64,000 bases of DNA from Macrostomum lignano (GCA_002269645.1 NIVC01001799.1:1-64000), one strand, 5' to 3'. Shown: positions 9,401-36,062, numbered from the stretch's first letter. The notes: a model not told the origin generated them from the sequence alone. Made by a program: numbers and translations.

Positions 9401-9545
9401 TGTTTGAATTTGATTTGACAACCACAGTTATTTGTAATAAAGGCAGAACGCATGCCACTGAGGAGTTCCTCACGCTTATTTTCTTGCTCACACCAACCCA
9501 CGGTCTTACAATGTTTTCACGAGTGGCGAAGCCATGAATTCATAT

Positions 9546-9630
<85 letters not shown>

Positions 9631-9666
9631 ATCTTTCTCTCTCTCTCTCTCGCTCTCTCTCTCTCT
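9546..9666. repeat. (CT)n microsatellite
   Basis: About 120 bp of CT dinucleotide with few interruptions. Confidence 0.99.
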
Positions 9667-9799
9667 TGCTGGGTGATAAGCTATGCCATAGACTACAACT
9701 CTACGAAGTCAGAATAAGTCGAGAAGGAGAGGAAGAAAACGAAGGCTAGCTCAGTATTTTCTTCGATTTAAACTTTCACTGAGCCTTGATCAAGTACGA

Positions 9800-11090
9800 C
9801 GGAATAGTGGAGGGGAGATTGTATGCTTGTCGACTGATGAATTGCAATTCGTCACTGGTCAGTCGGTCAACCGCTCCGGAGACATTGCGATCTCTTTAAT
9901 TTACCGAACTCGTGACTCTTGACGCAAGCTTCGTCGAGCTTGACTTACTTGACTTAGCTGCAGGGGGCGTCCGGTGGATGCAGCGAGGAGGCGGAGGAGA
10001 CCGCCCATTTCGCTAGCCCCTGGCGACCAATGACTTCCATCGAAGTGATGTCGCTCAGGGGACCCGTCGGTCTCGCCTGCAGCGCAGTACTCCTCACCGG
10101 CGGTGGGGAAGAAGTCAGCTCGTCCCGTGTCCCTGATGTACCGGGCGAGCAGCGGGATGCTCTCGGGCCTGCAAAGGTCGGAGAGAACCGGGTTTGGCCC
10201 GAGGTGAGTGAGCCTGGCCCTGGTGAAAACCGGGCTGTGGCAGATAAAGTGCTCGGAGTTTTCACTGCCTGAGCGGCAGAAGGGGCACCGCTCCTCGGGT
10301 ACCTGGCCCTGAAGGAAGCGGTGGCGAGAGAAGCAGCCATGCCCGGAGAGGGCCATACTGACAGCTCTGAGGTCTCTGCGGTTGACCCTGAGGAGGGCTC
10401 TACGCAGGAGAGGGGCAGGGGACGGCAGCACGGGATTGCCTGCAATTCCGGGTGTCGTACCACCTGCGGAGCTTCGTCTAGCAGTTTATACAGGGATTGT
10501 CAGAGTATCCGGAGTTAAGCGAGAGCGACGTACAGGAGATTCCGAAATTTGTGAAGGATTGCGCTGTGCGATCTATCGCGAAGCAGACCTAGATCTACTC
10601 TGAGAGAGTGAAGGCCTTTCTATCTGAGCGAGGGTTGTCAAGTGACCTCGAGATTATGCCGCCAAGATACGTGTCACTATCTCCGTTGTTTCTCTCTACC
10701 GTCAAGAAGCCCGATGGCACTGCCTACAATTGTAGCACACTTGTGTGCATAAACAGGCTGAAATGCATCGTTTCCTACTGGAAAATTGAGGCATGCCGCT
10801 CATTGGAAATCCGGATTTTGTTGAGCTGGAGAAGACCTTCAAGGCCGCCGCAGACAGTAACCGAGGTCTGTTGTTGACGGTGAGGTCTGATTTCCGGCAA
10901 TAAACAGTGAGGAAATGTCTAAACTGCACGCATACTTCACCATAGCAGATACGAAGAGGCTCCAGTATGAGGTGCTTTTTCTCATTGTGTTCCATTTCGG
11001 CTTTAGAGGTCAGCAAGGTGTAGCGCTCGTGTCTATGGCCATTAACTGAAATCTCAATTCCAGAAAACAACCCATTGTTTGGTGACTAAA
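9800..11090 (+). pseudogene. Degenerate Crypton YR (family D), N-terminal half, interrupted by a LINE fragment
   Basis: VKAFLSERGLSSDL, VKKPDGTAYNCSTLVCI and KRLQYEVLFLIVFHFGFRG (first catalytic Arg) are colinear with the other YR copies. Confidence 0.8.
9940..10469 (-). mobile_element. 5'-truncated non-LTR retrotransposon (R1/I/Ingi-like C-terminal CCHC region), ~530 bp
   Basis: LSGHGCFSRH...CPFC...ENSEHFIC motif. 3' tail (TAAGTCAAG)2 on the minus strand. Flanking 13-bp direct repeat AGCTTCGTC(G/T)AGC at 9927-9939 and 10470-10482. Confidence 0.85.
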
Positions 11091-15142: not shown

Positions 15143-17394
15143 ACACTATACGCGTATGAGGTTGAGCACAGTATGATTCGTAACAACTTTTAATTCAGCT
15201 CAATCAAGAGCATTCGAAGCTGTTGCGCTTTTCTTTCAGGTAGACTATACCGAAAACTTTTCGTCAGGGAAAGGAGACAAAAGATTTTGCGTGGCTTGTT
15301 TTAACGGACGATTTAGTAAAGTAATGCTGCTTGTAATTTAGGAATTTGTAAATGGAATTCGTATTCTAGTGATGTTTTTATCCAAAAATTCAGGCGAAGG
15401 TTGTTGTTTATTATTAATAAAATGACCAACACCAACTAACCAACCAAACCTAAAACCAACTAAAAAGGAGCGGTATATTTAGTTGGGGAAAAGAAATACG
15501 CTGTTTAAATTTTAATTAATAAAGAACTACTTGCACACCTCACAACGAATTCAATGCTTGAATGTATATCTAAAATCATTATCAGTACATGTCAGTTCGC
15601 GAATCTATATTGTTGCTTTGTAAAAGTAGAAAAAGCTTTCTTGTAAAATATAACAAATCTTAGTGTTCACTAAATAATTAAGTTATTATTTTGTTATTCC
15701 TGATAAGTAATGGTTTTAGCTTTAGCTTAAAGTTGAGTCATCTGTAAATTATTAACTGGTGGATTGTGCTGGGTCACTACCCAATATCAGTTCGATATCA
15801 ATCAATATAAACTGATCTGCACTCTGCACATGACTGACAGTTTATTTGATTCAGCAATAAAAGCTGGTCTCGTAAGAAGGTCGAAGAACTGCTGTTTGCA
15901 GATTAAAAATTCAAACTTTAAAAGGTTATGGCTTTTTAAACTAAGATAAAAATTTCTTATGATAGAACTGAAAGCGCACAGTAACTTTCCTGAATTGTCA
16001 GCAACTTTAAATTAATTTTCGAATGTAAAAATAAGAGTGGCTGAAAATTTGATAAAAGTTAAACGATTTGTCCTAGGGGGCACGGGTATATCAGTTTAGG
16101 AGATCTTGGCGCGGTTCCAAAAAGGGCCGGGACAGAAACTTGTGCTTTTGCAGAAACTGTCAGTAGCGGGGGGGACTGTTGGATGTTTCTTACAAATTGT
16201 TTATTCAGGCGATGTGAAATTCAAGTGTGTGTTGGAATTTTATCTAGTGAAATGCTTTTAATGCACGCACGGAACTTACCATTATCATTATTATTCCGTT
16301 GGATGACTAGATCACATGATTCGTTTGGTGAAATAATGGTGGTGCCGACTGTGAAGTGCCCATTGTGGGACAGTCAAGTGCTGTCTGGGAGTTTCACTAT
16401 GCAAGCATATTTGTACTATTTATATCTGTTGTATTCGAATACTATTGGAGAAGCTGAGCGGTGTAGAAACTGTAAAAGTACAGCGTTTCAGTTCGCTTGC
16501 ACCAACAAGATGCCCAATGTAACTGAGAGGCATCAGGTGCAAATAGATATTAGTTTAGCTGTCACATCAATCCGAGTTTACATTCAAATGATAGGTTCAT
16601 TGGCTTCAAGCAAAATAGCTGGTCTAACAGTTGACAGCAGAAAGGCAAGTTTAAATAAAAACGTTTATCAATGCTTGCGCTTTCCTTTTTATTGGGAATT
16701 TTCAACAAACAAGTGTCCCAAAATTTTGCGAAATTCTCCTCCTTTACTCTTAAATGTAAAATCGATTTTCCGGAGATACGGGGGCTAATTACAACATCGG
16801 AAATTCAAAACAGAACTGCAAATTTAATTTGGTCAAGACAGGCCATTGAAAACAAGTTGTCAGTCTAAATGGAACGAAAGCAACGCTTGAATGTTTAATA
16901 CAAACGAGCGTTTCTGTATTAAATCAACTAAAAGTCATCAATCAAAGTCAATCTTTTTTCTTTCTAACTCCTTCTATTCTGTCCGCTGCTCATTTAAAAG
17001 CGACCGCTTTTAGACAAAACAAACAACTGTTTTCATATCTATTTAATGAAGAGATAGTGCACGGCTTGAGATTATTGCAAGATCAAGTCGTGCATCTATC
17101 ACATTACCGACTGGTATAGCCAACTGTGGAGAAGAATTCAAATTTACCAATATCACTTAGCGTGCATTAATGCGCGATTGTCTGCACGCCGATTGACGCT
17201 TTAGTCGATCAGCTTGAAATAATGATATATTCTTCTGCACTATTTTTGAGTGTTATTGTTATTAGCGCGCGAGCGCGATACCGACCGCTGCATATGGTAG
17301 GTAGTTTGACCTGTACTTTTGCCCACCATATTCGTGTCTCTGTGAACACATTTGATTCTAGAAAATCAGTTGCCAACTTTTCTTAAACTGTAGA

Positions 17395-17767: not shown

Positions 17768-17961
17768 CGTTTCTGTGTAGGCCTGGTATTAACTGATTAA
17801 CATACGATTTCTTTGTTTAACAGTTTTTGATGTTTTTCTAACATAAAAAAATAAAATTTACCCTTTGTTATTGTTTAAATTGCCGTTGCGTGTTAATGTC
17901 CAAAATGAAATTAACACGCATCCCACGCGCGTGTTATTGTCACCAAAAGTGCATAGCAATG

Positions 17962-18486
17962 GATAAATAATCAGCGGTCCCAGTGCGTGACAACGATTGT
18001 CTAGCGAGCACGCACTGTAGGCCGGTAGGCGCTGTGCGACTGTGACTGAGACTGCGCACTCTATCATTTTATTTTCGACTCTAGCCTCAAGGTTAGCAGT
18101 CAAGCAAAGACTGTATGTGTGCGTGTTTCTGTCTATGTCATAGAATGCGATATATTTTGTATTCACTGTATTTTCTTTCATGCTGAGAGCCAAGCCCGCA
18201 ACTGAGAAATATAAGAGCCTGGAACAGAGGAATCCCAGACAAGACTAACGCAGGCAGACTTGCTGCTACAATATGGAAGACCCGATCTCTTTGCCTTCCG
18301 ATAGCTGAATCACAGCCCGCTTCATAGGCAACAGGCGTGAGCCAGAAAATCGTTGTCACGCACTTGGACCGCTGATTATTTGCATTGTTTTTCTATTTGA
18401 CGATCCTACAGACAATGCATTGCTTGTAGTAATAGATTGTTCTGCATTAAAAATGTGAATAATGATCGTCAAATTGCTAGACAATG
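17962..18486 (+). mobile_element. Non-autonomous AATG-bounded element, copy 1 (525 bp)
   Basis: AATG at 17958-17961 and 18483-18486. The left end GATAAATAATCAGCGGTCCCAGTGCGTGACAACGATT is inverted internally at ~18327-18367, ending in CATT. A paralogous empty site with a single AATG lies at 17162-17197. Confidence 0.85.
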
Positions 18487-18602
18487 CGCGATTGTCTGCA
18501 CACTGATTGATCTGCCAAGTATTTTTGTTCAAAGTATTTTAACGTCTATGGTAAAAACCATGATTATCTGCATTCACTTGTTGGCTCTACCATTCGGCAA
18601 TG

Positions 18603-18868
18603 GATAAATAATCTTCGGTCCCAGTGCGTGACAACGATTGTCTGGCGAGCGCCGGTAGGCACGCACTGTAGGCCGGTATGGCACTGTATGGCGCGAGCCA
18701 TCGGCACTGTATGGCGCGAGCCATAGACAAATCGTTGTCACGTGCTGCGACCGCTGATTCTTTACATTGTTTTTCTGTTTGACGATCCTACAGACAATAA
18801 ATTGTTTGTAGTAATGGGTTGTTCTGCATTAAAAATGTGAATAATGATCGTCAAATTGCTAAACAATG
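18603..18868 (+). mobile_element. Non-autonomous AATG-bounded element, copy 2 (266 bp)
   Basis: Same left end and same ~125-bp right tail as 17962-18486 but a different, shorter interior. AATG at 18599-18602 and 18865-18868. Confidence 0.85.
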
Positions 18869-18979
18869 GAGAGAATCTGTCGTTGAGTTGCACTGTTGGC
18901 TAGTCAATATGACAATGTGATAGAAGCACGTCTTGCAAGTGCAATAATGCCTAGACCACGGGTGCGAGTTTCTATGGAT

Positions 18980-21012
18980 TTTGCCATAGACGTACGAGTT
19001 TGCGTGTAGGAAAATCATTGTCTTTTGACCATAGACAAAGTCATTCCTGCACGGTTTTCGAGAAACGTTAAGAAGAGATGAAAATTGAGTGGAGAGTTTA
19101 TAGAAAAGTGTATAAAGCTTATTGACTATGGCGTCTGTAATCGACTCGGCTCTGAATCCTCCATTAATTGATTTTCGCTACGCTACGGTGTCTGGATTAA
19201 GTGGCGACGAAATGTTTATTGAAAGTGTGTCCAGCAACTTTGAGAGGACGGGCGACGATTTGACTGCACTGATAGCGGATTGCACGTTCAGCGAGGAATT
19301 AGAGAAACTTTTCAGCTCTGATCCGGAAACCTTGTGTAACCTTGACGAATTGGAAAGTCTTGCCGCTCAACTGGAACGCGACAACGAATCTCATTCGACT
19401 GTCTCTAAGGAGAAAGCTGTGATCAACCGCTTGACGGCCTGGTTGGCGGAGAATAATTTAAAAGTGGATTACGCGACTGCTTCGGTGGAAGAAATTGCCA
19501 AATGGGTCCGCTACTTCTATGCGACTCTGCGTAAGTCAGACGGCAGCTTCTATTCGCCGAATACAATCGTAGGAATTCGAGCCGCACTGTTCAGGTACTT
19601 TATGAAATTACGTGGCCTCAATATCATCGCTCACGAGGCTTTTCATAGCGCGAATTTGATGGTGAAGAATGTTTGCAATGCGTATTTGAAGTCCGGTGGT
19701 CGAGTGCAGCATTACGAAGCCATTGAGTCGGACGACCTTGTCAAGCTTGCTTCTTACTTCGACAGAAGCACTCCAACACGTTTGCAAGAAGAGGTATATT
19801 TCAATGTGTTATTTTATTTCGGCAATCGCGGCAGAGAATGGCTACGAGGTCTCACTGTTCGTTCATTCCGAGAGAAGGCCCTATCAAACGGAGCTATGGC
19901 GATCGAGTTGCAAGGCAGCACCTCAAAGAATGTAAAAGGCTCGAGTGACATGCGACTCTGCGACGACAATAAACAGGCCTTGATGGTGGCCAAGCCGGAG
20001 TCAAGGCACTGTCCAGTTCAGGCCTTCCAGCTTTATTTGTCGAAAATTACTGCAGGAATTTTCGCATTCGCATCCGCATTCCTCCTGGTTGGAATCAGGA
20101 GGACTTCTTTCTGCGTCCGAAACCACGAGTGAATGCGGATGGCATCTGGTACACCAAAGTACCAGTTGGAATCAACACTTTGGGGCCGTTGCTCAAGAAG
20201 ATCTCTTCGAATGCTAACCTGTCCAAGCTGTACACTCCGCATTGTGTGCGACCTACAGTTGTTACGGAGCTGCATGAAGCTGGCTTTTCTGTCGAAAAAA
20301 TTGCGAAGGTGACAGGTCACAAGGTGAGCAATTCTTTATTCTTAGTAAGTTTATTGACACATGGACAAGGAATTTATTAAACACCACCTCTATTCACAGA
20401 ATAGCGCGTCGGTAGAACGATACATCCGGAGAGGCAAGAAGAGGGACTCGATCATGGCAGGGATGAGTGATCAGCTGACAGTCGCTCTAGCTGGAACTAT
20501 GCCGGCACCAAGTTCTACATTGAGCGAAGCTCCTGCAAGGGCTGTTACAACTACCGACCCGTGCGCCCTGAGCGACGCTCCTACAAGGGCTGTTGCGACT
20601 ACCGACCCGTGCGGATCAGCGTCAATGTCAACTGTCAAGAAGTCACTGGTTGTTGAAGAATTGACCACCACACTTGTAGCAGCCCCCACTAAGCGGATGA
20701 AGATTTTGGCAAACGGCGAAACGAATGTTGTGCAGTTTATTTTCGAGTAAATGCCGAGAGGGGTGTGAGTAGGTCTATAGACTCATTAACTGTTTCCCTA
20801 GTTCCACTTATTATCCTTTTTGTTCTTCCATATTGTTATTGATTACATATTCAGTTGCTTCTAAAAATAAATTGTTAAATCGTGCAGGAATGAAGTCATT
20901 CCTGCACGATAAGCTAACGTATGTCAAGTGATTTCTACCATAGACACAGACATTCCTGCACGATAATAAAAAAAAAAAAATCATTCCTGCACGCTGTGGT
21001 CAAACGACAATG
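18980..21012 (+). mobile_element. Crypton family A, copy A1 (left ~50 bp missing or replaced)
   Basis: Near-identical to 27869-29911 from TTTTGCCATAGACG onward. Right end ...GGTCAAACGACAATG at 21012. Confidence 0.9.
19122..20750 (+). pseudogene. Tyrosine recombinase gene of A1 (2 exons, intron 20324-20399), frameshifted at 20054-20086
   Basis: Catalytic motifs FGNRG, YTPHCVR and TGHK|NSASVERY after splicing a 76-nt GT..AG intron. Confidence 0.9.
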
Positions 21013-21473
21013 CTGACTCGGTCATAGACAGTTGTGGGCGTAAATTTATTTAACAAAGCAACGGTAAAATATTAAGCGCGACAACAGTTTAGAGTTTTTT
21101 ATTTAAAGCAGTAAGTTTGAATTTCAGATGCCGGTGAACAATCACTTAGAAAAAGTAAAAGAGCAGTTCTCGAACTTGCACTCTATGAATATATGGAACT
21201 CGTGACACCGATTGATCGATTGGATATCAATTGGATTGCTGCCGGCGTAGCAACCACAGGTTCAAGTGATTCGCCGTAGGTAGGCTCAATTGCCGATGCT
21301 GAAGTTGACGACGGACCAGCACGCTTGCAGACTTCACGAGAGCCTGGCCGATGGACGATGACGCCTCCCGTACGACATTGTCACGTTTCCGTGATAGGTA
21401 GCGTCGCATAGTTGCTTCGTTTTGCATTTATCATTTTCAGTTTTTTGCTTGACAAGAAAAAATAATGTCAATG

Positions 21474-23402
21474 GTGTCTGTCTGTCTGTTATCGTATAAA
21501 TAGTACACACAGGCTCTTACAAGCTTCGATCTGACCAAGAAAAAACTTGTCTATGGCCTCAAGAAACCGAAATTTCTCGTATTTTTAGCGTTGAACAATC
21601 AGATTCGCTTTATCGTTGAACAATGATGGATTGCAGCTTTCGCAGTGTGTCTTCATTCAATACCATGCTTAATTTTTTCAATTCCCCGACAACTGTATTA
21701 CTAGCTTGACTGAAGCAGAAATTGCAGCATGCTAAACGTTATACCTATCGTCATTTTTGAGTTGCATGAACCTGGCTTTCGCTTGGAGCAGATATCAAAA
21801 ATCAAAAACTGTCCACCAGTAAATGGTGGACTGGATTTCATCCTGAAGCCTGGGGATAACGCTGGACCTATTGAAGCCGCTCTCACTGGCCGGTTCGAGC
21901 AACTTTCGGAAAATGAAATTGCCAGACACATTGAAGAGACCGTGCCGAAGACTACCAAGAAAAAGGCGCAGTGGGCCTTTTCCGTCTTCCGCGAGTGGCA
22001 TGACGAGAAGAAGCGTGCCTGGGCGATGGGTGAAGGCCCGTCACTTATGGTTCTCGCTGAGCTGGAGGATGCTAGCAAATGTGACCTGAATTACCTGCTG
22101 AAATTTTTTGTTATGGAGGCCCGGAACAAAGATGGTGAGCGCTACTCTGCGCCGACGCTGAAGGATCTGTATTCAATGCTACAGTATCACTGGCAAAACA
22201 CGTTCAAGAAGAATTGGAGCTTCTGGCTTGACAAAGAGTTCGCCGACAGTAAACGTGCTCTAGATGCAGCCATGAAAATCTCGACCAAGGCTGGAAATGG
22301 TGCAGGATTGCGGAAGGCAGATGTGATCCCCGAGTCTATTGAAGAGAAGCTTTGGATCGAAGGTGTGCTTGGAGGGAAGGAACCCAAGATGCTGGTGATC
22401 ACGCTTGTTTGGCTCGTTGGCAAACACTTTGCATTGCGTGGTGGCCAGGAGTTACGAGATCTGCTGTTCGATCGCCAAATCAAGCTTGAGACGGTTGACG
22501 ATGAAGTGTCTGAAGTATGTGGACAATGCCGTGACCAAAACTCATCAGGGCGGCTTACAAGGACTACGAAGGGACCCCAAAGTCGTTCCTGCTTTCCACA
22601 CTGAGAATCACCAAAAATGCATTGTGTGCGTCTACAAGCAGTACGTCTCTGTGCGTCCTAATGAGTGCAACGAGGCGCTGTTTCTGGGATGGAATCGAAA
22701 CTGGAATGGCCAGTCTGGATCTGCCTGGTTGACAAGGGCACCGATTGAACGTCATTCATTGGCAACCGTCGTCAAGGACGCCGTGGCCGTGGTTGCTCCC
22801 TCTGACACGGGACGCTACTCGAATCAGAGTCTCCGTAAGAGTTGCGCAACCCGCCTCCGCGAGGCTGGTATAGAACGGGCGGATATCTGCCGTGTGACTG
22901 GCCACAGCTCCAGTGCAGTGGAAAAGTACATCGGTACCTCGGTGACCATGGAGAAACGCACGAGTGCACTGTTGAGTGGTTCCTCAACCGGCCAACCGGT
23001 GAGTGAGTCTCGGGTGACTGCAGCGCAGGTGCAAGTGCCCTTGCCTCCTCTGGAGGTGCAGGCTCCTACGAAGAAAATGCGCATAGAGGCTTTTGGAGAC
23101 AGCAACAGAGTGGTGTTCCACTTTGATTAGTTTCATCCTCCCTCCTTCGCTGACTCCCTCTGACACCATCTGATACAAGACTGCTTATAACTGTTCGTTG
23201 TTAGATTTTTCACTTTCGATCCCCATTTGTTGCTATTCAGTGTTGTGAAACCGGTCTTGTTTCAAAAGTATAACAGCATCTTTGAGTTTCTACCATAGAC
23301 AATTATTTCTTGGCCTCCAAGAAACGCCTGATGGGAGTCTCAACTCATTTGAAAGAATGTTTTTTTTGCCATAGACAATTATTTCTTGGAGTCCAAGAAA
23401 TG
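21474..23402 (+). mobile_element. Crypton family B, near-intact copy (~1.93 kb; ends tentative)
   Basis: AATG at 21470-21473 and 23399-23402. Subterminal inverted repeat GACCAAGAAAAAACTTGTCTATGG (~21533-21556) vs CCATAGACAATTATTTCTTGGCC (23293-23315, repeated at 23369). Confidence 0.65.
21729..23130 (+). CDS. Crypton-type tyrosine recombinase (DUF3504-like), one apparent 2-nt deletion at ~22505
   Basis: GKHFALRGGQELR, KTHQGG, NQSLRKSCAT and TGHSSSAVEKY. Overlapping ORFs 21729-22604 and 22405-23130 join if GTGTCTG is restored to GTGTGTCTG (compare EVCLVY in the 1.4 kb copy). Confidence 0.85.
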
Positions 23403-23449
23403 AAAATACACAGAGGAGATAGGCAGCTGGCCGGGCCAAAGCGGGGATT

Positions 23450-24946
23450 AAATAGATGCGCGCTCACACTACTTTGTCGATGAAGAGGGAATGAGTAGCC
23501 ATAGGTTTGTCTTTAGCCACTCGGGGTTTTCGCGAGCTCCTATGAGGCGAAAGCTTAGTATGTTGCGAGAGTCTAAAGTTACCCATCTAGATAATATAAA
23601 ATCTGTGCTTTGGACTGCGTGGTTTTGAGTTTGAAGAGAGGAAGAAGAATTTTTGCTAAGCAAAATGCAGAGAAGCTAGCTCGTAATTGCTTTATGACAT
23701 CTGCAAAATCACGGACACAGTGATTGGAATCACGGTCTACGACTGCCCAAACTACGCTTTTGAATGTCCACCTGGAACAGATTCCACAGGTTTCCATCAG
23801 ACCGTGATCGGTGGGTTGCAGATTACTAAATGACCAACTTCGTCATTCTCTCTATAGAAGCCTTCGTACCTTTCGTACTTTTATCTACATTTAGCATCTG
23901 CGACTGAAATAATTAACATTACAGGTGTGAAGATTAAGCTTGCCGGATATTCCGAGCTGATCTTATGCGCAAGAAGTTCGAGCACAAATGGGCGAATGCT
24001 GTTGTATGCAGTCAGCACTTCGAGGACCACATGTACATGTGTCCGAAAAATCGTCACGAGGCTGACAGTCGACTTGCTTGGAATGCAATTCCTACGCTAA
24101 AGCTCTACGAGCAAGCCGTAACAAAGCAAATACATCGGCCGCCTCCAAAGCAGAGAACTGATTCTCCAGCATCTCTGAATCAAACTCGCGTAAGTGGCAA
24201 AGTGCAAAACGAAAACGAAGTTCCTAGTTTTGCCGAGACTGCAAGTGAGCGGCATGATAAGCCAAAGGGAAGGAAACCCGTTCCAAGAGCAACTTTGAGG
24301 TTCGCCTGCTAAAAAAGCCGGAATAATGAAAAAACTAAAGCGGCGAGTTTCTAAGCTGGAGCTTCGCTCCCGCAAGATGAAATCTGCATAGGTGGCTTCC
24401 AGTCGCAATTCTGCAAAAATTTCTAAATTCTCCGGCTTCAATCATTTGGTACAGGATTTCATCGAAGATCAAAAGAAAAATGCTAAAAGGCTTCGTCCAA
24501 GTTGGTCACGGTCTTCACTCCGAATTGCAACAGGTCTACTGCACTTCAGTCCTAGATGCCACCGTTTCCTCAGAGATTGGATTTAAACTTCCAAGCCGCG
24601 TCACGATTCGGCGAAAGATCGGATGCTGTCTACGCCAACCTGGCGTACTTGCCTGTACTTGCTTTCACCGTTTTCTTGTATTGCATTGCCTCCATTGTTC
24701 TTATGACGGACTTTATCAAAGTATGTTTTCCTTTTATGAGCATGCATACTTGCATCATTTTTATAAAAAACGTACATTTAAACCGTTTAAAGCATTATAA
24801 TACATAGAAAGATATGATACCTTGAATTAGTATTTTTTGTACTGAAAAATCGACAATCGTATAGCAGTTTTATCGCAAATCACAGCTATAGTCGATGGCT
24901 ACTCATTCCTCTTCATCGACAAAGTAGTGTGAGCGCGCATCTATTT
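23450..24946 (+). mobile_element. Internally deleted THAP-domain P-like element with ~55-bp TIRs
   Basis: TIR AAATAGATGCGCGCTCACACTACTTTGTCGATGAAGAGGGAATGAGTAGCCAT and its near-perfect reverse complement. THAP motifs FHRFP|(intron)..W..VVCSQHF..NAIPTL. Downstream LLHFSPRCHRFLR..LPSRVTIRR resembles the P-transposase N-terminus. No TSD found. Confidence 0.75.
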
Positions 24947-27868
24947 CTACTCAGTTCTATTCTTAAAAAACGCTGACTGAGAATTCTGTGTAAGTTCTGT
25001 GCATTATTCCCCACTGGTTTTTATTTATTTTGACGACCTGAGAAGGCGTATGTTCCAAATAAAGGCGTCCAAGCGTTTTTAATTGAAAACGAGCTCTCGT
25101 CCGATCTGATTTGAGTGCCACCAACTATTTTAAAAACTATTTGCGCCTTTTCTAATCAACACTGAGAACCCAGGGGGTCTGTTCTGTGCACTCCCAACAT
25201 TGATTTGCATTCGAGCTGGGCTGAATTGGTTCTTCAACCTTAACCGTCCAGGTGTAAACATTATTGGAGACACCGTGTTTACTGCTGCCAATCGAATGCT
25301 ACGGTCTATGGAGCAAAAATTAAAACATGTCAACCATCTAATCAACCAAAGACTCGAGATGAGTTTTCTGCTATCGAGAATAACGATCTGGTCAAAATCA
25401 TGGGCTACTTTGTTTGGGAAAATGGCGATGTACTTCAGCAGGAGGTGATATTCCACCTTATCTACTACAATTAGGACTACGTGGAGGAGAGACGTTGCCA
25501 TTGCTAACCAAGACAAGCTTCGTCTTTCTGCGAGTAGAAGACTCGAAAGGCAAAGAGTATGTGGTCATAAATTATGACATCATCAGGAAAAATTCGAAGG
25601 CTTCGTTGAAATCGAGCGAGTTCAAGGATGCCAAGAAAGCACGCATGTATACAACCGAGGGCTCGACGAATTGTCCTGTGTCGGCTCTGCGTATGTATAT
25701 TCACGCTTGAATTGAACATCGATACTCTCCTTCCAAAGCCGTGCATGAACATTTCTAACGGCCTGGCCAATCAACGCTGGTACTGTGGTACACGTCATCT
25801 GGGCAAAAATTCAATCGATCAACTGATGAGTAATTTGTCTACTAAACTTGCCCTCTCTAAGCGTTATACCAACCCAGGGACTACTCAATTCTCGGGACGG
25901 GAAACGGCCAAATCATGCAGAAAAAAGATGGAGGCCGATTTTCTCTGTTCTCTGCTGATCTTATGTTTTATCTCAAGAGCTTCAGCTTTTCACTATGTAC
26001 ACAAAATTTATCCCTCTTCAACTTCCTGTAGCCTGTTTCTACTCAAGTAATTTCGGATGAATGCTAGGAGACATTTTATACAGTACCCCTTTAATACACA
26101 AACTCGATGCTTGATAAGCCAAGTGCATCTGTTGTAGAAGTCTATGGGAAACATTGAAGCAAGAAGTGAAAGCCTGTATTATGTGATGGCCTATAAGGAC
26201 TGATACCATAGAATGCAAATAAATAGTCAACATTGGACTCCTCTGTGAGTTAACTTGGCTGGGTAGCCACGACACGACAGAAATTTTCATTTGCTCTTCC
26301 TAATTTTGCTTTGCGTTTTTTCGCATTCATGCCAAGGAAATGCTGTGTGCAATCATGCAAGTCGAACTATTTGAACGAAAAAACTTCTGTTAAAGTCTTT
26401 ACTTTCCCAAACGATCCTATAGAGAAGGAAAAATGGCGACTGGCTCTACCAAATGTCATCAAGGTGAGTCGAGTAGTAAACTGGTAATAGTGAAATTCGT
26501 GATTTTACTCTCTACTGGGCAAGTTGGAGAGACAGTGCATTGTCTCTCTTGTTCGGAAGGACAAGTTTTGCGAGGTATTGTTTCTGTAGCACACCGCTCA
26601 TAATTCTTTCATTCGCCGGTTCCGCTGAGAGATCTGCTAGGATTCCAGCCTACATTGAAGTATTTTTCACAACTCGATGCCATTATCGTTCGATGCATGA
26701 ATTTTCAACTTGAGTTGAAAGCGATGTCGTCGTCATTTCTTCAAGTGTTGGAATAAGAAAATACTGTCATCACGAATCCATCGATACAGTTTTTAATTTC
26801 ACAACTACAGCTAATTTCTACAAGTCCAGTGAGTCGTCGGTACGACATTGCCACACTGAGGCAGTCAGCTCTTATCTATTTAATCAGCAGTTCGGCTTAC
26901 TCTCAACTTCGCACTCTGTTGCCACTGCCACATCAAAGAACTCTCCGTACAAATTTGGCCGGTCTTGGAGAGATTGGAACTGCAGCCGATTCTGATGAAA
27001 CTATTCGAACAGTTTTTTCTGCACTTCGCGGCACCCAGCTGAACTGCGTTTTACTATTTGACGATTCCACGATACTGCAAAGTTTGTAGAATCTATTGTT
27101 AAGTTTTGGAAAACAGTTAATTGCCGCAACCCTTATTTGCACATACGACTGAACGATCCTGATCGAAAGCCAATTTCCTCGATTTCGGACGAACGTTTAG
27201 TATTCTTAAGTGCCTTGGCGCAGGCTGTGTCTGAACGTGGCGGTGGTAGAGGACGAAGTCGACATCAATGCCTTACGACCGAGACCAAAAACGCATTATG
27301 TAACAGTCTGTTCGGTGTGGTAGAAATATGTCACCAACTGCTGGAAACCGGTGCTATGCAGTATGTTCTGCTATCTGAATTCAACACATCCTTTAGAAGG
27401 TGAATTCGGAGTCTATAGCCAAATGAGTGGAGGCAACTATTTTATTTCAGTCGAACAAGTTTTTCTTAGCGCCCGACTGAGACGAATGAAGCTCTTTACA
27501 TCGCTTGAATTGTCCGACTTCAGTCACCAACAGAGCCACTGCTGCGACAGTCAACTATCAGATGAGGAATTAGGGACAGTCGACAGTTGCTGCATTTCTG
27601 CGGAGAATTTGACATCGCATGAGAATGCTGCCCTATATTACATTTCAGGTAAGTTTCAAATTGCTTCTTCAAGCAATTTTGTATTCTTGCACGAGTATAA
27701 TAATATTCGTATATATATATCTACTTTCATTTATCTTTTTGGTTTTAACTACCTAGGCTACGTTGCAGCAAAGGAAGGAATTCCCGCTGACGCAGAAGCA
27801 GCACGAAATGAACCATGCGAATTTACGGAGCTTGTTTCCCGTGGAAAGCTAGCGCATCCACCAGAATG

Positions 27869-29911
27869 TAATATTCCTGCACGAAAACGAGTGCGTCAAT
27901 GGCAAAAGCACGAGTGCATTTTGCCATAGACGCACGAGTTTGCGTGTAGGAAAATCATTGTCTTTTGACCATAGACAAAGTCATTCCTGCACGGTTTTCG
28001 AGAAACGTTAAGAAGAGATGAAAATTGAGTGGAGAGTTTATAGAAAAGTGTATAAAGCTTATTGACTATGGCGTCTGTAATCGACTCGGCTCTGAATCCT
28101 CCATTAATTGATTTTCGCTACGCTACTGGATTAAGTGGCGACGAAATGTTTATTGAAAGTGTGTCCAGCAACTTTGAGAGGACGGGCGACGATTTGACTG
28201 CACTGATAGCGGATTGCACGTTCAGCGAGGAATTAGAGAAACTTTTCAGCTCGGATCCGGAAACCTTGTGTAACCTTGACGAATTGGAAAGTCTGGCCGC
28301 TCAACTGGAACGCGACAACGAATGTCATTCGACTGTCTCTAAGGAGAAAGCTGTGATCAACCGCTTGACGGCCTGGTTGGCGGAGAATAATTTAAAAGTG
28401 GATTACGCGACTGCTTCGGTGGAGGAAATTTCCAAATGGGTCCGCTACTTTATCCGTTATCCTTTCTACGATTATACGATTGTAGAATACAATCGTAGGA
28501 ATTCGAGCCGCACTGTTCAGGTACTTTATGAAATTACGTGGCCTCAATATCACCGCTCACGAGGCTTTTCATAGCGCGAATTTGATGGTGAAGAATGTTT
28601 GCAATGCGTATTTGAAGTCCGGTGGTCGAGTGCAGCATTACGAAGCCATTGAGTCGGACGACCTTGTCAAGCTTACTTCTTACTTCGACAGAAGCACTCC
28701 AACACGTTTGCAAGAAGAGGTATATTTCAATGTGTTATTTTATTTCGGCAATCGCGGCAGAGAATGGCTACGAGGTCTCACTGTTCGTTCATTCCGAGAG
28801 AAGGCCCTATCAAACGGAGCTATGGCGATCGAGTTGCAAGGCAGCACCTCAAAGAATGTAAAAGGCTCGAGTGACATGCGACTCTGCGACGACAATAAAC
28901 AGGCCTTGATGGTGGCCAAGCCGGAGTCAAGGCACTGTCCAGTTCAGGCCTTCCAGCTTTATTTGTCGAAAATTACTGCCGTGCCGGGTTGGAATCAGGA
29001 GGACTTCTTTCTGCGTCCGAAACCACGAGTGAATGCGGATGGCATCTGGTACACCAAAGTACCAGTTGGAATCAACACTTTGGGGCCGTTGCTCAAGAAG
29101 ATCTCTTCGAATGCTAACCTGTCCAAGCTGTACACTCCGCATTGTGTGCGACCTACAGTTGTTACGGAGCTGCATGAAGCTGGCTTTTCTGTCGAAAAAA
29201 TTGCGAAGGTGACAGGTCACAAGGTGAGCAATTCTTTATTCTTAGTAAGTTTATTGACACATGGACAAGGAATTTATTAAACACCACCTCTATTCACAGA
29301 ATAGCACGTCGGTAGAACGATACATCCGGAGAGGCAAGAAGAGGGACTCGATCATGGCAGGGATGAGTGATCAGCTGACAGTCGCTCTAGCTGGAACTAT
29401 GCCGGCACCAAGTTCTACATTGAGCGAAGCTCCTGCAAGGGCTGTTACAACTACCGACCCGTGCGCCCTGAGCGACGCTCCTACAAGGGCTGTTGCGACT
29501 ACCGACCCGTGCGGATCAGCGTCAATGTCAACTGTCAAGAAGTCACTGGTTGTTGAAGAATTGACCACCACACTTGTAGCAGCCCCCACTAAGCGGATGA
29601 AGATTTTGGCAAACGGCGAAACGAATGTTGTGCAGTTTATTTTCGAGTAAATGCCGAGAGGGGTGTGAGTAGGTCTATAGACTCATTAACTGTTTCCCTA
29701 GTTCCACTTATTATCCTTTTTGTTCTTCCATATTGTTATTGATTACATATTCAGTTGCTTCTAAAAATAAATTGTTAAATCGTGCAGGAATGAAGTCATT
29801 CCTGCACGATAAGCTAACGTATGTCAAGTGATTTCTACCATAGACACAGACATTCCTGCACGATAATAAATCGAAAAAATCATTCCTGCACGCTGTGGTC
29901 AAACGACAATG
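27869..29911 (+). mobile_element. Crypton family A, copy A2, both ends defined (2043 bp)
   Basis: AATG at 27865-27868 and 29908-29911. Removing the element restores the host transposase frame HPPE-W-LFKFSRLCY. Confidence 0.93.
28062..29650 (+). pseudogene. Tyrosine recombinase gene of A2, frameshifted at 28451-28484
   Basis: Near-identical to A1, with the same intron after TGHK. The 3' half is intact (ITAVPGWNQEDFFLRPK). Confidence 0.9.
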
Positions 29912-31258
29912 GCTTTTCAAATTCTCACGCCTTTGTTATGCTAGCTTCACATCATATTCACCAAGCTGTGCAACCCGTGTGCAATAGATATTCAATGCTA
30001 TCGCCGAATATTTCTTTCAAGATAGGGACATTCATACCACTTCGGTGACTCGTCGCCTATCAAACTGCTTTTTCAAAGGACTTGTGCGAAACTGCAAAAC
30101 TGCAGAACAAACACCAGACGCAAGTGATCGTAAAATCACAAAGCTACGCAGTTCGTCTCGTTTATAAGCGCGATTGATACCGACTGAGACTACTGGATTA
30201 CGAATTCGATTTGTCGCATTGCTTATATTTGCTTACTACTATTGGGATACTTTGTTATGCTTACTTTGTTTGTTCTGGTTCATGTGCGTTTTGCACTTGC
30301 TTGTGGTTCTCTTGCCTTTTGCTCTTATCGTGTTTATTGTTCTTTATATGCTTGTTGTGAATGTTCTGTTTCTTGTGCTTATGCATTTGGTGTTGTTAAA
30401 TAATTCTAGTGCACAATAGTGTGTATTCTAGCGCGATCGTTTTCCAAATCTTGGTATACATGTATTGACTATGTACAACAGTTTTTTTAATCTTATATCT
30501 TATGTTGCATAACTTCTCGTATAATACAAGCTTTCACTTCTTGCTTCAATGTTTCCCATAGACTTCTAAAACAGATGCACTTGGCTTATCAAGCATCGAG
30601 TTTGTGTATTAAAGGGGTACTGCATAAAATGTCTCCTAGCATTTATCCGAAATTATTTGAGTAGAAACAGGCTACAGGAAGTTGAAGAGGGATAAATTTT
30701 GTGTACTCGTACATAGTGAAATGCTGAAGCTCTTGCGATAAAACATAAGATCAGCAGAGAACAGAGAAAATCGGCCGCCATCTTTTTTCTGCATGATTTG
30801 GCCGTTTCCCGTCCCGAGAATTGAGTAGTCCCTGTACCAACCACTGCATTAGAGTTACGCACGTGACGATACTGAAGGAGAATGGTTTCTCAAACACTGT
30901 TATCGCGTCTAATACTGGCCACAAGAATCCGGAAAGCATAGAGGGCTACACACGAGTGAGGCGCGATGCCGACTTCCAATGTCCTCAGCACTGAGCGTGG
31001 TCTTTCCAGGTCTGTGTTCACGCACTAACGCGCACTTGTGGTCTAGGCATTATTGCACGCGCAAAACGTGCTTCTATCACATTGTCACATTGACTAGCCA
31101 ACAGTGCAACGCAACAACAGCAAGCATTATGGTGCACGCTGACGAATCGATAAGCATCCATGATTAATTAGTCTATGGTTCTATCTATCGTCCAGTACAA
31201 TGGTTTTAAGAAAGTTGAGGGACTGTTGAAAGAGCTGAGCTGCAAAGCTGTCTCAGTG

Positions 31259-33033
31259 GGGTACCTCTCATTTCGCCAATTCTCGTTTCGCCGATTCTCG
31301 TTTCGCCGAATCTCATTTTGCCGATTCTCCTTTCGCCGACATTCTCATTTCGCCTAAATTAATTTCATAACCATCTGGACATTAGACCATAGACAACTAC
31401 ACTAATGCAAGTGTGATTTAGATGTCTATGGCTTGAAAATAAATTTAAAATTAAGAATTCTTTCTTCTGCATAGTCTATGGTAAAAAGTCTATAGCCAGT
31501 AGTATATATGTATGGTAGGAGGTTAGGAATAACATCCAACTTTCAAGCAAATATTCACTCAAACGCACCATGGCTCAAGCAGCACTACAATTAACTACTT
31601 TAGTTCAAAGTTCGCGTGGAGGGCAGGTGCTTCACATTATGTGATATTTGTACCGGCTCGATAAGAAGACTGAAGCAAAAGCATTTTACAAGTGTCGCCG
31701 CGAAGGTTGCAATGCCGGGGCCATCGTCGAGGGTGGATATATTTCGCATAAGAGTGGACAGCATCGTCATGCGACTGATGAAACTGAAGCCCAGAGGATG
31801 AAATTTGTGCAGCATATCAAGAACGAATATACCAACAACAACGCTCCAATGCCTCAAGTATACCGGCAGGCCATTGCTATGGACGCCTTTCAAGCAAACC
31901 CGGCGACATTGCCGACATTCGGTAGTATCAAGGATGCAGCATACCGTGCTCGGCACAAGAACTTGCCCCTCTTCCGGCCACTCGAGCTGATTATATCGTT
32001 GATCCAGAGACTCAACAAACTCTGTGGGTTTTCGACATCAATGGAGGCACACCGAATCGCATCGTTGGGTTTTTATCGAGCCAGCTGATCCGCGCACTCG
32101 CAGAAACTGATCGCCTTCAAATTGACGGTACCTTCAACTGTGTTCCGAATATATTTGAGATGCTGACAATCATCCATGGCAAGGTGCTTGGAGCGTGGGA
32201 ACCCTTGGCTTTTTTAAGGTTAGAATAATTCCTGAACACTTGGTTGCAGCCAAACGCTCGCTATAACCGACAAATGTGGAACCATTTTAATGAAGATGCA
32301 GACAGAACTATCAATGCCGCGGAGAGCCGACACCATGCGCTAAATTCGATAAGTCGCAACCATCGGCTCAATGTCCACGAATTCGTAAAGGAGTTGCGAG
32401 TTGTAATTGTCAATGCAGAGACGCGCATTCAGCAGCGAGCCGCGGGGACTGTACCACCGCAGCCGAGGCTCCGAACCCGGCAACTAGCGAATGCTCTAGC
32501 GACCTTCAGAGGGCAGTTTCTCAGCGGCGAAAGAAATCCACGGGACTACGTGGATGCTTGCAGCTACACTTTGCACGACGCAGTTGTCTAAGTTTCAACT
32601 GAACTCAACTCGTAATGATATTAACAGTTTAAAGTTTATTGTTAAAATGTCTGCTTCTGTGGTCTGTTATTCGGCTTCTTACTGTTTGTGTTAGGTCCAG
32701 TATGAATGAAAAATAGAATAAAATTGATTGCGAATGTGAAATACAGAAATGCCGATTGAAATCGTTTCTGGTGGTTTTTCTGGTAAAATAAATAATTGAT
32801 TTTATTGCAATGATTTCTGAGTTGATTTCTGTGTTCGTAATGCTGGTAAGCTAACGAAATTAAGCTGCAAAAAGGCTATGGTAGGTAAATACTCGTGCAA
32901 TATTACTAATACAATACTTTATTTTTCAAGCCATAGACATCTAAATCACACTTGCACTAGTGTAGTTGTCTATGGTCTAATGTCCAGATGGTCAGTGTCG
33001 GCGAAACGAGAATCGGCGAAATTAGAGATACCC
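31259..33033 (+). mobile_element. Internally deleted MULE/Mutator element
   Basis: Long TIRs GGGTACCTCTCATTTCGCC...; 9-bp TSD GTCTCAGTG at 31250-31258 and 33034-33042. FLYWCH/WRKY-like SSRGG..YKC..C..H.H, then IDGTF and RTINAAES motifs. Confidence 0.92.
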
Positions 33034-33315
33034 GTCTCAGTGTGTCTTCATTCAACACCATACTTCATTTCGCTACTGGGCCATAGACAATGAAAAACAG
33101 TCTTCTATAGCTTGATTTTCCCAATAAGGATTAAATTGCTTGTTCCTATGCCCAATTGGCTTGGAAAATGCTGTAATATACTTGTTTTTTACACTGCTTG
33201 GTGCTGAGCTGAGCAAAAAGAGGGGAGTTACCATAGACAGTGGAAACTTCGAGACGAAATTTCAATCCTTGTCACTCTGAAAAGGGACAATAGAATCGGA
33301 ATTTGCAGCCCAACT

Positions 33316-33874
33316 CATAGATCTTATATACACTAGATAGGCCACTCAGTGGCACCCAGCCAAACCATTGAGTCTATGGGAAGCACTCCAAGAAGCGGTG
33401 ATTTTCAGTTACGCTCGTAGTTTTCAGTAGTTTGTGCGCATATTTATCAGTAGCTGAAACGAGCATTAAATTACCTTTTTATTTAGCTGTGTCAGCGTCA
33501 GACTTAGGATGCCTTTGCATGACCAGTGTAAGGTTATAATCAGCAGAGTGAGTTCAGAGAGAAAGAAATCGTCTATACATTTTTCTGGGTCAGTAGGCTG
33601 GTGGACAGCGGTGTATTTTTTTAAAGAAAACTAAAAGAAGTTGGCTCAAATGAGCGGATCCACCCCTCTACACAGTTCTGCGGCAGAGCCCCTCCCCGGG
33701 CTGATCCGTGTCTAGCCTGCTAAAAATTTTAAGCTGCGTCATTTTATTGCGATTCAATATATTTCTTCGTCCATTACCATAGACTATATTGACGATTAGT
33801 TTTCAGCAGTGCAAGCGAACATTTTTTCGTTAGCTGAATGGGGAGTGGCCTATCTAGTGTATATAAGATCTATG
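33316..33874. mobile_element. MITE with 32-bp perfect TIRs and 8-bp TSD (P-like or hAT-like)
   Basis: CATAGATCTTATATACACTAGATAGGCCACTC at 33316 and its reverse complement ending at 33874. Flanks GCCCAACT and GCCCAATT. Confidence 0.88.
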
Positions 33875-36062
33875 GCCCAATTAGCCAGGCTATTTTAGTC
33901 TGTGTGTGAAAGGATGGAGAAAAGTTTTTTATCAATACTTGTAGATCCAAAAAGCAAGGTCAGAATAAGCTGATTTTGCACAGATCACTTCAGCACCGTT
34001 CAGGCTTTCATTGGATTACTTTGTTACCGAATTATCCCAGGAGTAGTTGACTAAACGGGCATTGTCAAAATTGAAACAGAGTTTGGCAAAGTTGAAGCTC
34101 GATCTGTCAATATTGATTGCAGATTTTGAGTGCCCGGCCATAGAGTGTCAATATTGAAGAGGAGTTTGTCAACTTCAAAGTTCTCCTTGTTCAAGATCGA
34201 GGGTAAAATGGTGTAAAGCAATCGTATTTTCAGCTTATTTAGCTGTAGAAATTCAGAAATAAAGCTAAATAAACTTTGGTTTTATAGCCTAGTCTGCAAT
34301 TATTTAAATTAGCTAGTAGGTTGACATAATTAGATAAAGCTGGTATATAGCATTTCACATATAACAAAAAATAATAGGACTTCATACTTACCCTGTAAGT
34401 TCGTAGCTCAATCCAATTAACAAGTTAATTCTTAGTTTCACTTTCAGCCCCCGACCGCGTGTTGTGAGACCGACTTCTGTCTACTCTATTATATAATTTT
34501 ATTTTATCTGTATGCCTCAACCCCGGGCCAAAGTGTTGGATGTAAAAACGATCAATCGATAATTCTACGTCAGCAGGGGGGGGGGGGGGTCCAAAACTGT
34601 CGGAGCAAGCTTATTGGCTGGGAGGAGGGCTGCCCCCATTCTTGACATAGACATAAGACTAGTTCGCCAAACTCCCCACGCCTAAGGGGCAACGCACTGT
34701 TGTACTCGTAAGCAGCTTGTTTATCAGACTACATAGGCCATAGACAGCCTGCTTGGGCCGGGTTTAGTACAGAACAGCAACGTTAAAATCTGGTAATGTT
34801 AGAGATAGGAGAAATGATAGGCAAGGAAATTAATAAAAGTGAAAAAAAGAAGACGAGAGGGGAGGGGAGGAGAGGAGAGAAAAGAGAGGAAAGAGAAGAT
34901 TAGAGAGAATGGAGCTGAGAAAAGACACAAACCTTGAGCAGGCCGGATTGTCATTGTAAAATTTCAAAGGACCCGAGAGCCGGATAAAGTCAAGTGTGGC
35001 TTGCGAGCCGGGCGACTTTAGCCGACCCCTGCAAGGAGATGTCAATATTTCTATGTTAATTTTATTGGCTCTGCTAAAATAAAAAGTCCAAATTTAAATT
35101 AATTAAATTACAAATGTTTGTCGATTTCAGTAACCTCAGCTAAATCCGATATTTATTTAGTAGATAATATTCGACTAGCACCTTGGGAAGCAAGCTCACG
35201 CAGACCATTAGTTAGTAACCTATTAGTGTACAAGCGAAGCAGAGTGAAACATCAGTAGGTTGTTTAGTAGGTACTCGTAAGCTGAATTATGGTTAAACGA
35301 AAGCTTCAACACATTTGTAGCCATTATTTCCCACATACCCTCGTACACATTTTACACTAATGCAAAAGATAAGCAAGGTAGATAGATAAAAAACGTGGGA
35401 AAGCATAAGCAGTCACGTGATGAAATGATGAAGTTTGAAATTTATACCGAGGAGCAATCTGTAGAATACGTGTGAAGTGTAGCTCGTATATACAATGGCA
35501 GGTGTTCATTGAAGAGTGCACCTATTATTTGCTTATAGTGAGTTTTTCTAATTAATTGCTAGTGCATAAATATTATCAGCCTATAGATAGTGAGTCAAGT
35601 TTCACATCAGTAGTGATAACGCGCATGAACGTACTAATTCACTGATCAGATTTACAAGAAAATCAGCACACTGTCGAAAGGAAATATTTACAAGAAAATT
35701 TATTTTTTTGTTATCAAGGCGCTATAAGGCACTAATATCATACTATATAATCGTTTTGACTTGAATGATTTTTGTCTTAAAGGAATATTAAGCTACACAT
35801 CCGGTGAAAAATATAAACTAGGCATCTATGAATGCAGTTACTTATTTGATTATCGGAAAATGATCTACCTTTAATAGGCTTGCTTGCTAAAGTAACATTT
35901 AACTGCTTCATAAGAATTGCCATAACCTTGCTTGCATCATAACTTAGTCCGCTTACAAAATCAAAGTAATCCGGCTAATCAAAGTTAACTTTAAATAGTT
36001 TAAATAGTTTGAAGCAAGCAAGAGATTGGGCAGTGTCGCACAGTTCAAGCAAAGCACGTCAA

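Follow-up and report, generated by a model that had tools for sequence, protein, structure and literature searches.

The stretch of DNA analyzed here, 64,000 nucleotides of contig C1799 (NIVC01001799.1:1-64000) of the flatworm Macrostomum lignano and hereafter called the window, contains a dense pile of nested and abutting repeats between positions 17958 and 31202. CryptonA-type DNA transposons are nested here together with their miniature derivatives, and the region also holds a P-like THAP element in which one of the Crypton copies, A2, is inserted. When the protein of the best-defined family (family A) was used as a tblastn query, recombinase-like segments were detected in the window at 10891-11016, 19128-20747 (a second family A copy, A1), 22618-23127 (family B), and 28068-29647 (A2), together with two recombinase fragments of a further element, C: 25364-25468 and 30821-30973. 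All genome-wide searches described below were performed on the 764-Mb, 5269-contig assembly of M. lignano.

The recombinase gene of A2 was located by tblastn on the plus strand at 28068-29650, and consisted of exon 1 (28068-29223), a single intron (29224-29299), and exon 2 (29300-29650). A2 itself is a defective copy, with the reading frame broken around 28452-28485. Intact genes were found elsewhere in the genome (locus L003 and others), and encode a protein of 506 amino acids once the intron, with the borders GHK|gtgagc…cacag|NS, is spliced out; this protein showed 99% identity over its full length to an annotated protein of M. lignano. Pfam assigned DUF3504 (8e-10; 39.4 bits, with a cutoff of 29.7) and Phage_integrase (4e-8; 33.8 bits, with a cutoff of 27.1) to the 506-residue protein, both above the curated cut-offs. 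The catalytic residues R234/R236, K267, H363, R366, H389, and Y398 were invariant in an alignment of 10 relatives with identities down to 29%, and the C-terminal HxxR...GH...Y block was aligned with Tn1549 Int (a weak PDB match) and XerA; the best match among the solved structures in PDB was human QRICH1. The 2.05-kb element of family A contained one spliced open reading frame (ORF), and the only Pfam domains found were DUF3504, Phage_integrase, and QRICH1, the last of which belongs to family B. Neither an ORF nor a Pfam match for reverse transcriptase (RT), RNase H, or methyltransferase was present in family A. Judging from its domain content, the recombinase is of the DUF3504/CryptonA type with all of the catalytic residues. 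The original prediction, which described these elements as Crypton-type tyrosine-recombinase DNA transposons, therefore agrees with the Pfam domains, the invariant R-K-H-R-H-Y set, and the single intron-bearing ORF. The intron was present in all 13 full-length copies examined, and the exon-1 frame of 408 amino acids was intact in 9 of the 13. Because the copies were 96-98% identical to each other and long frames were retained, the sequences point to recent activity of family A.

The ends of family A were defined by comparisons among its copies. A2 occupies 27865-29911 on the plus strand: when A2 plus its flanks was compared with the genome by BLAST, matches started and stopped on the same bases, 27865 and 29911, and these boundaries were common to approximately 30 genomic copies. 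The right terminus T' (CTGTGGTCAAACGAC) together with the AATG carried by the element (29893-29911, plus strand) was invariant across 30 fetched loci, which ended in …GGTCAAACGACAATG with AATG everywhere except for one AATT. The left terminus L (27869-27888, plus strand; TAATATTCCTGCACGAAAAC), which holds the first ATTCCTGCACG motif, was also constant (…TAATATTCCTGCACG…), and the 4-mer preceding it was variable. This 4-mer is AATG in A2 (27865-27868, plus strand), where the tabulation of ends indicated that it was derived from the target, being ANTG in other copies. Among 27 left ends of family A collected by a genome-wide pattern search (one mismatch allowed), 15 had AATG, 9 had ATTG, 2 had ACTG, and 1 had AGTG, such that position 2 alone varied; an additional copy with a variant hairpin (L008) had ACTG. 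The asymmetry between left and right 4-mers gave p = 0.0014 for independent sites (Fisher's exact test). AATG had been predicted on both sides of every element with definable ends. This was correct for A2, with which the boundaries of approximately 30 other copies coincide, and for the right ends, most of which had also been predicted, and were found, to read ACAATG (family A, the A-like miniature family mini-A', the mini family, and C), whereas the left 4-mer is ANTG with a variable position 2.

A repeated 12-mer near the ends of family A, and a palindrome at 29781-29808, had also been noticed in advance, and both were found as described. CATTCCTGCACG occurred 8 times in the forward and 2 times in the reverse orientation in the window (~0 expected), and the palindrome of A2 (plus strand), CGTGCAGGAAT-GAAGTC-ATTCCTGCACG, was perfect with an 11-6-11 geometry; direct 12-mers come after it, at 29851 and 29881. 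A classical core, in which inverted recombinase-binding arms surround the junction AATG, was looked for and is doubtful: of the two arms, just the right one (ATTCCTGCACG, located 4 nt from AATG) was recognizable. Separately, an 8-mer, CCATAGAC, or its complement was found 38 times in the 64 kb (~2 expected), for example in 7291-11031, 18544-34738, and 44909-46533; it sits inside the T/T' segments, adjoins the 12-mers of family A, recurs in many flanks of other loci, and looks like a motif common to Crypton-like repeats of M. lignano.

The two miniature elements of the window, mini-element 1 (17958-18486) and mini-element 2 (18599-18868), both on the plus strand, had been predicted to be bounded by AATG, and this was repeated in 16 independent copies in fetched loci, whose left ends read (C)AATG and right ends AACAATG. 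Genome-wide, 339 left ends (ANTG followed by L) and 331 right ends were found for the mini family, and the modal length calculated from paired left and right end coordinates was 215 bp. AATG was found in 92 of the first 100 left ends versus 99 of the first 100 right ends, with deviations at position 2 (p = 0.017 for the left/right asymmetry, Fisher's exact test), and in the individual copies whose left 4-mer was ATTG, AGTG, or ACTG, the right one was AATG. The core observation, namely, defined AATG ends, holds for two families: A and the mini family.

Several further observations were made on the mini family. Mini-element 1 contains an unrelated 310-bp insert (18024-18333), which was rejected as an AATG-ended element because it is an independent repeat with no AATG ends; at G000 C952:595599-599902, this repeat was present in three tandem copies with a 2003-bp period. 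Left and right ends of the mini family were 2064 bp apart at G000 C217:300310-302373 and 2640 bp apart at C355:7051-9690, and these long copies may represent the autonomous partner of the 215-bp elements. In one copy (L045; G000 C2341, locus ~1337-1646), the inverted copy of L (L') was present as an arm in three tandem copies, and the centre of the L/L' palindrome differed in length in nearly every mini copy, as an unstable hairpin would. At two loci (L039 and L040; G000 C3253 and C1989), a mini-element lay inside a ~16-bp satellite (GGGCTGTGTGAGCAAT) with CAATG in every unit, which, by its sequence, is a natural array of candidate targets.

Internally deleted forms of family A each recurred at different sites with differing flanks and left 4-mers; six loci, for example, had the deletion that fuses query 371 with query 1337. 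Since the same deletion occurs at different sites, these forms moved after the deletion arose. The deletion derivatives, the 215-bp mini-elements, and mini-A', a 267-bp element with A-like motifs that adjoins A copies, retained only L, an internal region described below, and T', and all were probably mobilized in trans. Abutting elements display a junction-like sequence of the form tail-AATG-left end. One common AATG linked A to a following mini-A' (L005), mini-A' to a following A (L024), and A to a related family (L009), and, in the window, a single AATG linked mini-element 2 to the left repeat of C (18865) and A1 to the next repeat (21009).

In order to reconstruct empty sites, the left flank, one 4-mer, and the right flank were joined and matched against the genome. 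Removal of A2 restored the ...HPPEWLFKF... reading of the P-like element, in agreement with the P-E-W-L codons of the original prediction, and at least 12 other P-like copies matched across the junction at 97-99%, some with equal lengths (647/647 and 377/377); the matches included the homeologous contig C150, which is without A2. Identity was 100% over 204/204 positions at each of L004 and L027. Empty sites of the exact length were also found for L047, L055 (at least 25 paralogues), and L012 (left 4-mer, ATTG), and matches with small indels for L002, L007, L029, L041, and L057. In the window itself, 17162-17197 had been regarded as an unoccupied paralogue of the site of mini-element 1; the resemblance was real (17162-17196), but spanned only 37 nt, and a better control was provided by 17030-17180 on the minus strand, an unoccupied paralogue of the target site of another mini-element (L045) with a single AATG (CATT at 17102-17105 on the plus strand). 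The paralogues carried exactly one 4-mer, neither zero nor two.

The origin of the two 4-mers was examined at L028, where an insertion with the left 4-mer ACTG and the right 4-mer AATG is located in a high-copy repeat. Approximately 120 empty paralogues of this site read GGG-ACTG-AGCTGC, and there was no AATG among the matches listed. Therefore, the target was ACTG and was kept at the left, while the AATG at the right belongs to the element; it follows that no target-site duplication occurred, and that AATG is not a core of which each side receives a copy. The proposal that AATG is the strand-exchange core, rather than the duplication left by a staggered cut, was thus right in that empty sites hold one copy, but must be amended in that the left 4-mer is the ANTG of the target and the right 4-mer the AATG of the element. 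Variable 4-bp flanks, which had been named as a sign of duplication, were found only at position 2 of the left side with AATG nearly constant on the right, a pattern that is not that of a target-site duplication. Because the element brings the right AATG and the ANTG of the target remains on the left, the effective crossover is placed after position 2. In three copies, the right end was AATT or AATA, with AATG on the left where known, a hint that the target may supply position 4 on the right and that the crossover would then be close to the T; mutation is an alternative in these three cases. At another site (L002; G000 C1476, locus ~920-1090, and C3336:55761-55968), the sequence of the empty paralogues, AAAAAC-AGAC-AATG, exceeds the reconstruction by four bases, and this AGAC resembles the CGAC directly before the AATG of the element.

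A second feature of these elements was found in their interior. The reverse complement of the joined ends, T'-AATG-L, was locally aligned with the interior of each element, and scores were compared with those of shuffled sequences (standard deviation of ~2). In A2, an internal complementary region at 27938-27974 (plus strand; GTTTGCGTGTAGGAAAAT-CATT-GTCTTTTGACCATAG) scored 42 versus 17.5+-1.9 for shuffles. The corresponding scores and shuffle means were 53 and 15.8 in mini-element 1 (18361-18405), 39 and 14.3 in mini-element 2 (18745-18787), 48 and 14.1 in a 214-bp mini-element, and 40 and 13.5 in mini-A'. With the form L'-CATT-T, the region repeats the joined ends (right, then left) in inverted orientation, and matches spanned both sides of CATT; in each of these elements, the internal match next to the core was 2 nt shorter than the junction. 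In A2, it is located 74-110 bp from the left end, and it was retained in other copies of family A, including A1 (18975-21012, plus strand), in which the first ~50 bp are missing, the region is found at 19001-19037, and the right end reads ACAATG. The terminal L and T' of family A are unrelated to each other, and the T half of the region complements T'. The left ~100 bp of A2 was predicted to fold into a hairpin of -35.5 kcal/mol (z = -8.1), and the 215-bp mini-element into two adjoining hairpins of -72.9 kcal/mol (z = -13). L and L' covaried (GAAAAC/GTTTGC in family A and GGTCAC/GTGAAC in mini-A'), as did T' and T (GGTCAAACGAC/GTCTTTTGACC in family A and AATCAGCCGAC/GTCGGATGATT in mini-A').

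The original prediction had recognized part of this architecture, as an inverted copy of the left end located 70-125 bp inside the right end and followed by a unique tail. The inverted copy exists, but the tail is not unique, since in the mini-elements its start is complementary to their own end, and the placement was wrong for A2, in which the true copy is at 27938-27974 and one of the 12-mer repeats is located near the right end instead. On the sequence evidence, the end architecture is an internal complementary region of the type found in DIRS1 retrotransposons, in three families of M. lignano, and this region probably acts in cis, either within the recombination site or in end-joining.

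Homologues of the recombinase with 33-39% amino acid identity were found in marine and other metagenomes. Two contigs from different samples, one of them TARA (L077 and L078), were 99.9% identical and diverged directly after …GCTAATAAACAAT (...AAACAAT); their internal region scored 60 versus 18.5+-2.4 for shuffles, and a 2-nt gap was observed again. Another contig (L081) started with ACAATG-L and ended with T'-ACAATA, and L082 ended in …TTACAATG / …TTATTACAATG; ATTG-T was located after the 5' hairpin. The T/T' match was 15/15 in L073, which was reached by 0/500 shuffles, and significant T/T' pairing was found in L076 (T', …CTCGTTTGAATG). In L075, L080, L083, L084, and L085, the flanks were too short or the scores of the internal region were at the null level. 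Since metagenome relatives carry both the ACAAT(G) terminus and the internal region, these are features of the clade beyond this locus. L076 (JGI metagenome, 4.9 kb) also contained two different Crypton recombinase genes in the same orientation (464-1771 and 3221-4669), and a junction-like sequence, T'-CAATG-L, was located directly 5' of the second gene.

The remaining elements of the nest differed from this picture. Family B, a second recombinase family (21830-23453, plus strand) in which Pfam found a QRICH1 domain, was delimited by at least 15 genomic copies, which start at 21830 and stop at 23452-23457; these are not the AATG-flanked ends 21470/23399 tentatively given previously. At the corrected boundaries, no AATG pair was found in family B, and the search for an internal region yielded nothing above shuffles. 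The outer element C (18865/31199) is defined by a single 94-nt inverted repeat (I3), and was not confirmed: related copies of its right end overran the proposed end by 36-57 bp. Its left repeat (18865-18975, plus strand) abuts mini-element 2 via the common AATG and is joined to A1, and it is an unconfirmed end of a 12-kb element; its right region (31027-31202, plus strand) consists of an inverted copy of 18877-18970 followed by CATT, a tail, and AATG, a boundary not matched by related copies. When nested inserts were removed and the genome was searched, no other contiguous copy of C was found; the piece 21013-21426 within it is part of a different, larger repeat. An internal region in C was limited to the L' half, at null-level significance. 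B and C, two of the five elements cited in the original prediction, do not bear out its generalization, but its main idea is largely right.

The P-like element that hosts A2 (25875-30834, plus strand) has inverted ends of ~310 bp with 97-98% identity, a THAP domain from 26333 onward, a weak match to the helix-turn-helix of P transposase, and at least 12 genomic copies; it splits the third Crypton recombinase gene into the two fragments given above. On the homeologous contig C150, the P-like interval is ~10 kb versus 5 kb in the window, with A2 absent, and an extra 1682 bp (G000 C150:355467-357148) is present at the AATG preceding family B (window 21822-21830). Directly at the end of family B, at 23450-24946, is a 1.5-kb element bounded by perfect terminal inverted repeats of 39 bp (AAATAGATGCGCGCTCACAC...), and a short tandem array (TCTCATTTCGCC / TCTCGTTTCGCC units) is located at 31262-31345, just past the proposed right end of C.

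We consider it probable, at roughly 80%, that these elements move by site-specific recombination between a joined-end site and ANTG targets, in which the element supplies the AATG on the right and the crossover falls after position 2. The element extends from L to T' ending in (AC)AATG, and would be inserted by the DUF3504 tyrosine recombinase immediately 3' of a target A-N-T-G; the left junction holds the target 4-mer and the right junction the AATG of the element, with no duplication. The effective crossover would be AA^TG or AAT^G, the exact cleavage positions being presumptive. The joined ends, T'-AATG-L, would read …GGTCAAACGACAATGTAATATTCCTGCACG… in family A and …GCTAAACAATGGATAAATAATCAGCGG… in the 215-bp mini-element, presumably in a circular intermediate, and within the element L may pair with L' as a long hairpin and T with the distant T'. 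A number of points weigh against this interpretation. Tyrosine recombinases normally cut 6-8 bp apart, and a crossover within 1-2 nt is unusual for them; a bias of mismatch repair or post-insertion processes may account for the 4-mer pattern; and four extra bases are present in the empty paralogues of the L002 site. All of the empty sites are paralogues or homeologues from a single assembly, and no circle, excision event, or polymorphic insertion has been observed directly. The function of the internal region is deduced from conservation and covariation only, families B and C do not have the AATG/internal-region pattern, and the ends of the metagenome relatives are each based on one to three contigs.

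A more specific version, which we regard as possible but doubtful, is that a single-strand fold, with L paired to L' and T' to T, sets both ends side by side on the internal CATT and so forms the recombination site, and that one strand exchange at AA^TG is completed by replication, as in CTX phage, to excise or insert the element. Under such a folded single-strand exchange, the target base would stay on the left, minimal derivatives would keep L, the internal region, and T', and Cryptons would gain copies. If so, the internal region and the AAT junction would be ancestral to eukaryotic tyrosine-recombinase transposons, and DIRS retrotransposons would have inherited both features from a Crypton-like ancestor.

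The evidence was also weighed under three other explanations of the AATG ends and the internal region. It is conceivable that only the terminal AATG matters and that the internal inverted copy and hairpins are incidental, as head-to-head relics, promoters, or sources of small RNA; palindromes arise readily in repeats, the role assigned to the internal region comes from sequence comparisons, and C has only half the pattern. We consider this unlikely because the same layout and the 2-nt shortening are shared by three M. lignano families whose L and T are unrelated and by at least three families from metagenomes, L/L' and T/T' covary, and the internal region is kept by all of the amplified deletion derivatives and both mini families, the 215-bp mini-element keeping little else. 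Somewhat more improbable is that the elements are DIRS1-like derivatives that have lost RT and move via RNA and cDNA with RT supplied in trans, the internal region functioning as in the DIRS1 model. A region complementary to both termini, an AAT/ATT core overlap, and the absence of duplication do match the signature of DIRS1 exactly; however, family A is only 2.05 kb with one ORF, RT, RNase H, and methyltransferase were not detected in it, it has no inverted terminal repeats, with L and T' unrelated, its recombinase is of the DUF3504/CryptonA type, and the intron was kept in 13/13 full-length copies examined.

The mini-elements, and perhaps family A, may alternatively be regarded as DDE cut-and-paste elements or miniature inverted-repeat transposable elements that duplicate a preferred 4-bp target. 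The presence of AATG on both sides of most copies would be expected from such elements, and the mini-elements are short, numerous, and provided with long inverted repeats. Duplication is nevertheless refuted by the insertion with ACTG as its target, which has AATG on the right and ACTG in the empty paralogues; moreover, empty sites hold one 4-mer rather than zero, variation affects the left side only, the right terminus does not repeat the left in inverted orientation, so that the inverted repeats are not terminal there, and the sole encoded protein is a tyrosine recombinase. We therefore regard this explanation as extremely improbable.

No order of eukaryotic DNA transposons is less well understood than the Cryptons. 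CryptonA elements of animals are the source of the vertebrate ZMYM, QRICH1, and KCTD1 genes, and their undefined ends have hampered annotation and blocked testing. The present locus and its copies provide exact ends, an ANTG target rule, a putative crossover position, and a candidate minimal substrate of 215 bp, and intact recombinase genes are available in a flatworm amenable to transgenesis. The internal region is a concrete, testable cis element for how eukaryotic tyrosine-recombinase elements form and use a junction, which has long been a question, and, together with the ACAAT(G) terminus, may be used as a search signature for the clade in other genomes.

Among bacterial systems, CTX phage with XerCD and integron attC sites carry two inverted half-sites on one strand that fold into a hairpin recombination site, and a single strand exchange is completed by replication. 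With a folded site of this type, it would be understandable why the mismatched base ends up on one side only; on the other hand, these systems are bacterial and use host or integron recombinases, whereas a single-stranded intermediate is hypothetical in the present elements. The integrases of Tn916/Tn1549 and CTnDOT use many target sites with non-identical crossover regions and need 0-2 bp of identity. Tn916/Tn1549 and CTnDOT carry flanking "coupling" bases from site to site, whereas the junctions described here are exact with no coupling bases.

Among Cryptons, the closest parallel is CryptonF-1_cRei of Chlamydomonas reinhardtii, which ends in CACCG and targets CAYCG, and whose activity has been observed (bioRxiv 10.1101/2022.05.23.493040). 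Like the present elements, it is a recombinase-only DNA element with near-identical end and target motifs (AATG/ANTG here), no duplication, and an empty site that consists of the target motif. It differs in being a CryptonF with a GCR1_C domain, as opposed to DUF3504 CryptonA with another motif; its activity was observed rather than inferred, and an internal complementary region was not reported for it. The recombination logic itself is thus already known: it was put forward by Goodwin 2003, and observed for CryptonF-1_cRei (bioRxiv 10.1101/2022.05.23.493040). For animal Cryptons, Kojima and Jurka 2011 gave terminal repeats as not found ("n.d.") (PMC3212892), and a 2026 study on Glomhopper stated that the boundaries of CryptonA could not be defined (PMC13465315). 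The elements of M. lignano share with these animal CryptonA elements (PMC3212892; PMC13465315) a DUF3504-type recombinase, a length of ~2 kb, the lack of a C-terminal DNA-binding domain, and abundant non-autonomous derivatives, and differ from them in that the ends, target, and internal structure are defined. A short terminal direct repeat is the only distinguishing structure of Cryptons according to a curation guide; here, neither long terminal repeats nor terminal inverted repeats were present, and a short ANTG/AATG direct repeat was found in 27 family A and ~339 mini copies, with one copy in the empty site.

The original prediction was not aware of a description of this end architecture in this lineage. 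In literature searches on Cryptons for an internal complementary region, hairpins, or subterminal features, nothing comparable was found; however, the same device is known in DIRS1. In DIRS1-like elements, two internal regions complement both termini and overlap on a 3-bp junction, mostly AAT, and integration proceeds by recombination at the junction core without duplication (PMC3266345; PMC8969392). The likeness to family A lies in an internal region of which the 5' half complements the element start and the 3' half the element end, around an AAT/ATT core. Family A differs in having no RT, RNase H, methyltransferase, or inverted terminal repeats, in retaining an intron, and in the position of the region, which follows the 5' hairpin in family A and its marine relatives instead of being located at the 3' end, and is 2 nt shorter than the junction. 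Because the other characters of DIRS1 are absent, family A is regarded as CryptonA with a DIRS1-like internal region. What appears to be new is, first, that the ends of an animal CryptonA are defined and, second, its internal complementary region; by carrying the joined ends inside the element in inverted form, Cryptons are linked structurally to DIRS1 retrotransposons.

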